Under the pieces are notes generated by a model. The model was not told where the DNA came from and made no database searches. It saw nothing but the letters and a program-made list of their open reading frames with translations. 64,000 nucleotides of DNA, from the sequence record OP292654.1; one strand, 5' to 3'. The position numbers and the translations under genes were made by a program. Each line of letters starts with the position of its first letter. Position 1 is the first letter of the stretch. Positions 12,109 to 14,964 of this stretch are shown piece by piece.

Positions 12109-12137
12109 TTGACAGGGCTACGTCTATATGATATACT
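12109..12137 (+). promoter_or_regulatory. sigma70-type promoter
   Basis: TTGACA-N17-TATACT with TG extension. Confidence 0.8.
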
Positions 12138-13277: not shown

Positions 13278-13351
13278 ATAGTAGTAAGTCAATTGGTAAC
13301 GACTCCCTATTAAGATTAGGAGAATGTGTGGTTCAAATCCCTCCTACTATT
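13278..13351 (+). pseudogene. degenerate tRNA-like gene, anticodon AAG
   Basis: ATAGTAG/CTACTAT acceptor, AGTC/GACT D-arm, CCTA-TT AAG AT-TAGG; T-stem largely mispaired. Confidence 0.6.
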
Positions 13352-13360
13352 AAGTACTAT

Positions 13361-13433
13361 GCCTCGTTAGCTCAGTTGGTAGAGCATCCGACTTTTAATC
13401 GGAGTGTCACTGGTTCAAGCCCAGTACGGGGTA
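13361..13433 (+). tRNA. trnK: tRNA-Lys(TTT)
   Basis: cloverleaf, TCCGA-CT TTT AA-TCGGA. Confidence 0.95.
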
Positions 13434-13450
13434 CTAACTTTGAGGTACAT

Positions 13451-13636
13451 ATGAAAAGCACAGAAGAACAATTTCTGAATTTATTATCCAAAGACATTGA
13501 TGAACATCCAGAGAACTTAGTACCAGTAAGTACTGAAATGTGGAATAGCATTAAAGAACTAACTGCTGGTGTTGAAGTTGATTTGGATTCACCTATAGAG
13601 GACGATGAAGATGAAACCGGAACAATGGATCATTGA
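13451..13636 (+). CDS. PrlF antitoxin C-terminal-domain-like peptide
   Basis: FLNLLSKDIDEHPENL...ELTAGVEVDLDSPIEDDE resembles the E. coli PrlF C-terminus (FLRFLDADIQNNPQ...KLVAGMDVNIDDEIGDDE, from memory); GAGG RBS. Confidence 0.65.
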   Translation: MKSTEEQFLNLLSKDIDEHPENLVPVSTEMWNSIKELTAGVEVDLDSPIEDDEDETGTMDH

Positions 13637-13740
13637 TGATATGCGAGCAATGCGTTCTATAAAAGAACGTACTTACGAACAACAAGCGTACCTTGAGTTA
13701 CTTCAATGGTATTGTTCAGTACTGAACGGGAAAGCATAAT

Positions 13741-14064
13741 ATGACGACGAATATCGTTTTGCTTATCGTTTCTGCTATGTTATTAGCCGCAGCGATGTTT
13801 ACGTACTTTGGTTATCTTAGGATTTCCAGTATTTTGTATGTTCGGTTGGTAGAACAACCAGAACCACCAAAACCTGGTGAATTAAAACAGTCTCCGTACC
13901 GTATAGCACGATATTGGAATACGTATCAAAACAAAGATCTGTATTACATCTATAAAGGTAATACAATGCATGTTGATAGGCGTTTCAGTACTGCTAAAGA
14001 AGCTCAAACATCACTGAATGAGTTAGAGCAGTTGGAAGGCTATACACATACTAAGGTGGTGTAA
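13741..14064 (+). CDS. single-pass membrane protein (SPY paralog trio)
   Basis: N-terminal TM helix; QSPYRI..YIYKG..FST.KEA..LNELE. Confidence 0.7.
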   Translation: MTTNIVLLIVSAMLLAAAMFTYFGYLRISSILYVRLVEQPEPPKPGELKQSPYRIARYWNTYQNKDLYYIYKGNTMHVDRRFSTAKEAQTSLNELEQLEGYTHTKVV

Positions 14065-14065
14065 A

Positions 14066-14392
14066 ATGCATCCATTACTAATCGCAGCTTTAGTTGTTTT
14101 TGGTGCGGTATGTTTGATGTACATTAATGTCAAAAGCATCGCAGCTACTATATACATCAAGACAGTACGGGTACATGAAGAAATTGATTCTGATTTACCT
14201 GAAAGTCCATATTCAATATATCCTGCTAAAACACAAGCAGGAAAAACTGGATTTACCATTTTGAAAAATGGTCGTTATATGACCATTGCTGGTAGTAGCC
14301 AATATACCGTCTATCACATATTAGAAGATGCGGTAATAGCCATGAACAAGTACGAAAAACTTGATCGTGTTCGTGTAACTAAATTGGATTGA
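14066..14392 (+). CDS. single-pass membrane protein (SPY paralog trio)
   Basis: N-terminal TM; ESPYSI..FTILKNG..LEDAV..MNKYE. Confidence 0.7.
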   Translation: MHPLLIAALVVFGAVCLMYINVKSIAATIYIKTVRVHEEIDSDLPESPYSIYPAKTQAGKTGFTILKNGRYMTIAGSSQYTVYHILEDAVIAMNKYEKLDRVRVTKLD

Positions 14393-14396
14393 TACT

Positions 14397-14711
14397 ATGA
14401 GTGACATTCAAGTACTGCTATTCTGTTGTCTCATTGCGTTTATTACCATTTGTATTGTTTACGTAATGAATAAAAAGACTGCCGCACGGTTATTCAACCA
14501 GGTAGTTAACCCTGAAGATGCGTTACCACCGAGTCCTTATGGGGTTTCTCGTGAACATGGTTCTGGCGGCTGGGGATACTGTATCACTAAAGATGGTGAA
14601 GTGATGTTCAGTGATAATAAATCCCGAATCTTTGGTTCAATTGAAGAAGTTGTTCGTGAGATCAACAAACTCGAAGGAGTTCAAGGATTCAGGAAAACTA
14701 AAATAAGGTAA
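14397..14711 (+). CDS. single-pass membrane protein (SPY paralog trio)
   Basis: N-terminal TM; PSPYGV..YCITKDG..FGSIEEVV.EINKLE. Confidence 0.7.
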   Translation: MSDIQVLLFCCLIAFITICIVYVMNKKTAARLFNQVVNPEDALPPSPYGVSREHGSGGWGYCITKDGEVMFSDNKSRIFGSIEEVVREINKLEGVQGFRKTKIR

Positions 14712-14715
14712 AATC

Positions 14716-14964
14716 ATGAAAGATTCTATTGGTGTTGTGTTCTTTGCGATTGTCGCATTTATCATAACAACAGTACAAGTATTCTTCGGTTCATTATGTA
14801 CTGGTGCGGTTATTGTTGCTCTTTGGCAGCTTTTTACCATCGGCCCAGCAGCAATGACCTTTGGATTCTTTGTATTAGGTGTGGTAAAATTTGCGGCATG
14901 GGTAACTGCTATTGCGATGACTATCATTTCAGGTGCGTTCCTAATCGGCAAACGAATATGGTAA
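14716..14964 (+). CDS. hypothetical membrane protein
   Basis: almost entirely hydrophobic; TAAGG RBS. Confidence 0.65.
   Translation: MKDSIGVVFFAIVAFIITTVQVFFGSLCTGAVIVALWQLFTIGPAAMTFGFFVLGVVKFAAWVTAIAMTIISGAFLIGKRIW

Follow-up and report, generated by a model that had tools for sequence, protein, structure and literature searches.

What could a 61-residue piece of a bacterial antitoxin do in the genome of a lytic jumbo phage that carries no cognate toxin? The question is raised by Xanthomonas phage XbC2 (OP292654.1), a Mimasvirus with a genome of 367,901 bp (≈368 kb). XbC2 is lytic by prediction and forms clear plaques, and the paper that describes it does not discuss the gene considered here (PMC11273794). 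We analyzed a 64,000-nucleotide stretch of this record, hereafter the window, in which a position equals the record coordinate minus 303,901. The initial annotation, made from the letters of the window, had read the gene as the isolated C-terminal domain of a PrlF-like antitoxin and had proposed that it counters YhaV-like toxins from within a cluster of tRNA and anti-defense genes.

The PrlF-like ORF and its genomic setting

The PrlF-like ORF occupies positions 13451–13636 of the plus strand, stop included, and runs from an ATG through 61 codons to a TGA; its translation includes the stretches quoted in the initial annotation. A GAGG ribosome-binding site (13442–13445, plus strand) lies 5 nt before the ATG. 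Further upstream, across a 16-nt gap from the ATG, is a tRNA-Lys(ttt) gene at 13361–13434 on the same strand, called by ARAGORN and scoring 67.6 bits against Rfam. The same order of tRNA and ribosome-binding site is kept in Erwinia phage Kaldavass, which by megablast is 90% identical to XbC2 over this region, in phage GAP32, and in L121, a relative that encodes a longer form of the protein.

GenBank gives this locus a different extent. Its CDS XbC2_499 (13328–13636), labeled "type II toxin-antitoxin system," begins at a GTG and as annotated crosses the tRNA-Lys(ttt) gene, a tRNA left unannotated in the GenBank record. The homologs in Kaldavass (61 aa) and GAP32 (60 aa) both begin at the ATG, which identifies the short ORF as the correct one; the start of the XbC2_499 CDS is over-extended.

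The window contains 21 tRNA genes, spanning 2.9–19.7 kb. We also saw a weak tRNA-like element at 13278–13351. Its Rfam score is 33.6 bits, where the gathering score is 29. ARAGORN needs a lowered threshold to report it, as a Leu(aag) whose D and T arms are poor, and GenBank enters it as tRNA-Leu (AGG). This element may be a decayed tRNA. The proposed setting in a tRNA and anti-defense cluster is borne out in its tRNA part, whereas the anti-defense part found no support among the neighbors: a Pfam scan of 10 neighboring ORFs returned nothing at E ≤ 0.01, three further ORFs gave sub-threshold Pfam matches only, and PADLOC found no match for the downstream small ORF, the sole neighbor scanned with it.

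That downstream ORF belongs to phrog_27942 (E = 1e-34) and lies on the plus strand at 13611–13739 (42 codons) or, if read from the ATG at 13605, spans 44 codons, so that it shares 26–32 nt with the end of the PrlF-like ORF. Its counterparts are GAP32_458 and CBB_478. In Pectobacterium phage CBB a different gene precedes it, so that a functional link between the two ORFs is conjectural. Beyond it we observed three tandem ORFs of ≈105 aa each (13741–14064, 14066–14392, and 14397–14711), in each of which an N-terminal hydrophobic segment is apparent and which, by eye, seem to have a central motif in common. The first of the three matches phrog_8184, and the trio is also found 3′ of the PrlF-like gene in Kaldavass, GAP32, CBB, and L121.

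We found no promoter-like site between the tRNA-Lys gene and the ATG of the PrlF-like ORF. The nearest strong promoter-like site on the plus strand is at 12109–12137, although such sites are no commoner than in shuffled sequence, and the first terminator-like site downstream on this strand is at 14745. With no promoter-like site to itself, the PrlF-like ORF is probably co-transcribed with the array of tRNAs and small ORFs. In the CBB genome paper, the genes of the homologous region are counted as suspected early genes (PMC5259590).

Homology to the C-terminal half of PrlF

The resemblance to PrlF proposed in the initial annotation is borne out by a profile comparison. Residues 6–52 of the phage protein (13466–13606, plus strand) match positions 53–99 of the 99 in the Pfam family PrlF_antitoxin (PF15937) with 39.8 bits, above the gathering score of 32 (E = 5.4e-10). 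The NCBIfam model NF007429 is matched at positions 66–113 of 114 with 43.7 bits, far under its full-length equivalog cut-off of 125. Profile positions 1–52 of PF15937, the AbrB/MazE-type half, are unmatched in the phage protein. The match leaves only five residues before it, and farther upstream the frame crosses a tRNA gene, in agreement with the earlier statement that the N-terminal AbrB domain is absent. The PrlF_antitoxin match is likewise confined to the C-terminal half in GAP32_457 and CBB_476. By comparison, PrlF of Erwinia phyllosphaerae covers Pfam positions 1–99, and its N-terminal half is also recognized as MazE_antitoxin (PF04014).

Gap-free alignments link the phage protein to antitoxins that stand beside a toxin gene: it is 57% identical to residues 69–114 of a RefSeq PrlF from an Enterobacter cloacae conjugative plasmid and 59% identical to PrlF of Pantoea sp. 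B65, each of which adjoins a YhaV gene. We then compared it with a bacterial set, obtained by scanning one genome per species for the motif L[TVL]xGVEVDLD, that comprises 80 confirmed loci. The columns conserved in this set at positions not imposed by the search motif are F8 (76/80), L9 (79/80), L12 (77/80), D15 (78/80), and P20 (80/80), and the phage copies retain every one of them. On this homology, the phage ORF is a stand-alone counterpart of the C-terminal half of PrlF. It resembles PrlF (SohA) of the PrlF-YhaV module in its C-terminal ≈47 residues, with all family-conserved positions kept, and differs from it in lacking the AbrB/MazE half and a YhaV neighbor, in falling under the NCBIfam full-length cut-off, and in being encoded by a lytic jumbo phage.

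The homology of the PrlF domain was already known from GenBank, from IMG, and from the 2017 CBB paper (PMC5259590); what is new is its reading as counter-defense. From the PrlF domain match, the authors of that paper suggested that CBB_476 helps override host transcription (PMC5259590). This proposal fails because the DNA-binding AbrB/MazE half is precisely the part that is missing, and we hold it to be exceedingly improbable.

The phage protein is acidic (pI 4.05), with 18 D/E residues and 3 K/R residues. An AlphaFold2 model built with 27 homologs has a mean pLDDT of 82.5, and its blocks 11–40 are above 90. A first predicted helix (residues 5–18; 13463–13504, plus strand) carries the family-conserved F8, L9, L12, and D15, and a second (residues 28–37; 13532–13561, plus strand) carries W31 and L37. 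An extended acidic tail follows (13562–13633, plus strand), which includes GVEVDLD at residues 40–46 and in which confidence drops toward the end. The shape of the model would suit a segment that wraps around a partner. Foldseek comparison of the model with the PDB gave nothing below E = 5. By sequence, the phage protein and a profile of the 27 sequences likewise found no meaningful match in the PDB and no structure of PrlF or of PrlF-YhaV. As the PDB holds no PrlF structure, the fold search is neutral evidence.

The closest bacterial matches are those of Pantoea sp. B65 (59%), Candidatus Symbiopectobacterium (57%), and the Enterobacter plasmid PrlF (57%), after which other Enterobacterales appear amid a scatter of other phyla. 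Residue W31 is present in 10/10 phage copies, as opposed to 8/80 bacterial copies; six of these eight are from Enterobacterales, an order with seven members in the set. Judged by these comparisons, the nearest cellular relatives of the phage domain are Enterobacterales PrlFs. They belong to the host clade of the phage group, since the sister phages of XbC2 infect Erwinia, Cronobacter, and Pectobacterium. No Xanthomonas locus is found among the 80 best bacterial loci. The window itself has a GC content of 38% and is, over this region, 90% identical to an Erwinia phage; all other relatives infect Enterobacterales. Xanthomonas genomes are far richer in GC than this window, and the low GC together with the Enterobacterales-infecting relatives makes the reported Xanthomonas host unusual for the phage group.

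Toxin linkage, carriers, and forms of the domain

Whether the phage retains a toxin was addressed with two kinds of search, both of which agree with the earlier observation that no toxin gene is adjacent. From 76 bacterial YhaV ORFs we built a profile, which matched nothing in any frame of the window and nothing in the flanks of the stand-alone phage and plasmid copies described below. A tblastn search of 50,697 phage records with two YhaV proteins, from Verrucomicrobia and Pantoea, found none in XbC2 or its relatives; the one match was a 3.7-kb Vibrio fragment, to which a permissive cut-off adds a chance match.

In bacteria the two genes are closely tied. At 72 of the 80 loci a YhaV ORF immediately follows in the same orientation, and in these linked loci the domain forms the C-terminal end of an ORF of at least 110 aa. 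The YhaV frame is fragmented or truncated in three of the 72. Across the whole set, the domain is in the C-terminal part of its frame, after at least 38 residues, at 78 loci and near the N-terminus at two, both among those without YhaV. The Pantoea neighbor scores 179 bits against Pfam Toxin_YhaV. YhaV is also found on 323 PLSDB plasmids, 173 of them conjugative, and the Pantoea-type protein recurs at 77–83% identity on plasmids of Enterobacter, Citrobacter, Klebsiella, and E. coli. No PADLOC model matches the phage protein, full PrlF, or the two YhaV proteins, and in the literature searched we found no description of YhaV-PrlF as an anti-phage system, although absence from either source is not evidence of absence.

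This linkage bears on one alternative target, the Lon protease. Phages are known to target Lon, as with PinA of T4 and Gp4.5 of T7, and the XbC2 protein might similarly be a decoy substrate or modulator that diverts Lon from host antitoxins or phage proteins. A review states that Lon-dependent phenotypes are activated both by ectopic expression of prlF and by the prlF1 allele (PMC5408214), which also counts for such a role. The linkage of the PrlF C-terminal domain to YhaV at 72 of 80 loci, however, favors toxin binding as what this half is conserved for, and we consider action on Lon decidedly unlikely.

To see how widely the domain occurs by itself, we drew on a profile search of 1.84 billion representative proteins, which gave 399 matches at E ≤ 0.001, many of the top ones 50–72 aa long. 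One such match, a 53-aa Verrucomicrobia protein, turned out to have its start set wrongly: the gene encodes a full PrlF of 133 aa beside YhaV. The 87 matches of at most 72 aa, counted in a protein set made up mostly of the best 150 of the 399, are therefore an upper bound. By tblastn, the sequenced phages that carry the domain are XbC2, Kaldavass, GAP32, and CBB alone, and many related jumbo phages lack the gene. Further copies, on the phage and unclassified contigs and the Pantoea-type plasmids described next, were checked directly: their frames measure at most 75 codons from stop to stop, except for a 308-aa fusion, and no YhaV flanks them. Stand-alone copies are present on three further jumbo-phage contigs (L004, L021, and L027), on a 227-kb unclassified contig, and on a 245-kb phage-like contig (L122) that carries a phage-type clamp loader and has no megablast match to phages. 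An unrelated 58-kb phage contig encodes a 51-aa copy inside an RNA-repair cassette (L007, 4427–7650), where it is surrounded by a phosphoesterase/RNA-ligase gene, a T4 Rnl1-like ligase, and a P-loop kinase. The 308-aa fusion is a phage protein with the domain at its N-terminus.

Plasmids carry the domain as well. Copies of 58–60 aa stand alone on Pantoea-type plasmids of 83–87 kb; one of them, a 58-aa orphan on an 83-kb Rep3 plasmid, lies 240 nt downstream of a gene for a 154-aa PemK_toxin-domain protein of the PemK/MazF family (both at L130, 5296–6177), and a related plasmid has the orphan and lacks the PemK gene. In IMG/VR, four variants of the motif yielded 12 real matches, of which three are complete PrlF-YhaV modules and the rest orphans. 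A 106-aa metagenomic protein (P0044; L128, 536–856) joins the PrlF C-terminal domain to the C-terminal part of a TacA antitoxin, and the DNA-binding domain is absent from both halves; its gene is on a short contig beside an HTH_3/MqsA-like (antitoxin-like) gene and IS66. The carriers seen in this analysis are jumbo phages, one other phage that has an RNA-repair cassette, and plasmids of Enterobacterales.

Within the jumbo phages, the domain occurs in a short form, as in XbC2, and in a long form. In CBB and several metagenomic relatives it is the tail of a 156–165-aa protein whose first ≈105 residues form a separate N-terminal domain, corresponding to the N-terminal part of phrog_23380. That family is the only match of the N-terminal domain, for which neither Pfam nor the PDB gave any. 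The ≈105-residue domain is also found alone (P0170) and, in the gene next to CBB_476, fused to a Cys-rich module (CBB_477; both genes at L003, 2692–3676). An AlphaFold2 model of a long form (P0010) reached a mean pLDDT of only 35.7 and was left out of the fold search. We also observed the ≈105-residue domain at the same genome position in Yersinia, Serratia, and Erwinia jumbo phages. No such domain was found in the window, and a tblastn search of phage records found none in XbC2.

DNA alignments relate the two forms directly. Common to both are the upstream tRNA and ribosome-binding site and everything from the E-E-Q-F codons onward, and removing the segment that separates the two copies of a 9-bp direct repeat from an L129-type long form yields the short form, so that the two differ by a clean in-frame indel of ≈104 codons. 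As read from these alignments, the short form descends from a longer phage protein that lost an unrelated N-terminal domain in frame. The tail of XbC2 is nearest to the long-form relatives L121 and L010, and that of GAP32 is nearest to that of CBB (dS 0.15), so short and long forms are intermixed. A clean in-frame indel between intermixed forms indicates that the PrlF domain works without its N-terminal partner. Together with the TacA fusion, in which the tail is joined, in this one case, to a TacA toxin-binding part, the pattern suggests a modular PrlF tail, which can be acquired or lost and can be fused to other domains, here to the ≈105-residue phage domain.

A gene shortened in this way could be a functionless leftover, whether its source was an antitoxin taken up by the phage or the longer phage protein, and the patchy occurrence noted above, with four sequenced phages by tblastn and many related jumbo phages lacking the gene, is compatible with such a fate. 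The state of the gene argues against it. Over the domain, dN/dS is 0.12 between XbC2 and Kaldavass, 0.14 between XbC2 and L010, and 0.16 between XbC2 and L121. The start codon and ribosome-binding site are intact and conserved, and the motif positions are unchanged while identity among the phage copies spans 93% down to ≈54%. The GC content of the ORF (35.5%) and its GC3 (24%) fit an AT-rich phage and not a recent capture. These comparisons identify the ORF as an intact gene under purifying selection, present in several lytic jumbo phages, and make a leftover very improbable.

The fusions and the plasmid copies raise a further alternative, namely that the protein is a generic acidic clamp of helix and tail that has been retargeted to a partner other than YhaV. 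Such a partner might have another toxin fold, as do PemK/MazF-family proteins or different RNase toxins, or might be a protein of the phage. The PemK/MazF-family gene just upstream of one plasmid orphan makes another partner possible, the eight bacterial loci without YhaV are compatible with one, and the sister phages fuse the PrlF tail to a ≈105-residue domain that itself occurs alone or with a Cys-rich module; the role of this fusion domain may redefine the function of the tail. Yet the related plasmid retains its orphan without the PemK gene, XbC2 has neither a detectable ≈105-residue domain nor a detectable YhaV, and the positions conserved in YhaV-linked PrlFs are all present in the phage copies. 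We regard a partner of this kind as unlikely.

A possible surrogate antitoxin for host YhaV

The reading we favor, to which we assign a probability of about one half, is that the ORF encodes a PrlF derivative reduced to its toxin-binding domain, a surrogate antitoxin that would keep host YhaV inactive during infection. The C-terminal half is taken as the toxin-binding half because this is the general layout of type II antitoxins of the AbrB/MazE type. In the scenario we envisage, infection would halt host gene expression and the labile host PrlF would decay, and the freed YhaV, an mRNA-cleaving RNase of the RelE family, would then cut phage messages. The phage protein, probably made early from the tRNA/small-ORF transcript, would bind YhaV by means of its two helices and extended acidic tail, in the manner of host PrlF, so that the bound toxin would stay inactive. 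Without a DNA-binding half, it would neutralize the toxin and repress nothing. Type II antitoxins are usually highly specific for their own toxin (PMC11825919), and the phage copy is only 57–59% identical to the nearest host PrlF tail, which counts against YhaV binding; that YhaV-PrlF is not an established anti-phage system counts against the defense side of the scenario. Counter-defense against YhaV-like toxins nevertheless seems to us the most economical reading. The interpretation offered at the outset stands in its descriptive half, a C-terminal PrlF homolog with neither a DNA-binding domain nor a YhaV gene; the anti-defense setting found no support, and we offer the function as an interpretation.

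T4 Dmd, which acts on RnlA and LsoA, and T4 TifA, which acts on ToxN, are small phage proteins that directly block a host toxin-antitoxin RNase, and the XbC2 protein, if it acts as we propose, would be comparable to them. To our knowledge, however, neither Dmd nor TifA is a sequence homolog of a host antitoxin, whereas the homology of the XbC2 protein is clear.

A closer precedent is AdfN of T-even phages, a DarG1-like protein that counters DarTG1 and with which an antitoxin homolog was first shown, in 2025, to serve as phage counter-defense (PMC11825919). Both proteins are homologs of a host antitoxin encoded by a lytic phage without the cognate toxin, and in both an N-terminal domain of the bacterial counterpart has been lost. 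They differ in that AdfN derives from a type IV system and is an enzyme that reverses the product of the toxin, whereas the XbC2 protein would be a stoichiometric binder of type II descent; the function of AdfN rests on experiment and that of the XbC2 protein on our interpretation. A November 2026 review lists AdfN, Gp145, and TifA and includes no type II derivative.

The orphans also recall the "anti-addiction" idea, in which an antitoxin without a toxin is kept to neutralize an incoming toxin-antitoxin module, an idea with limited experimental support (PMC11825919). The 58–60-aa copies on Pantoea-type plasmids fit it. Anti-addiction modules, unlike the XbC2 gene, are borne by plasmids and chromosomes and not by lytic phages.

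These comparisons lead us to a broader and more tentative proposal, which we think somewhat doubtful as a whole: that proteins consisting of the PrlF toxin-binding domain are recurrent mobile devices against toxin-antitoxin systems, that the XbC2 protein would be the first type II-derived counter-defense of a lytic phage, and that YhaV-PrlF would act in abortive infection against large phages. If this is true, the principle by which a phage steals the antitoxin would extend from the enzymatic, type IV AdfN to the far larger world of type II systems, and the toxin-binding half alone would suffice. It would also suggest a rule for finding more such proteins, namely to search mobile elements for the C-terminal domain of an antitoxin that stands without its DNA-binding domain and without a toxin. 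YhaV-PrlF, for its part, would gain a role in phage defense, and its presence on the conjugative plasmids of Enterobacterales would have a reason.
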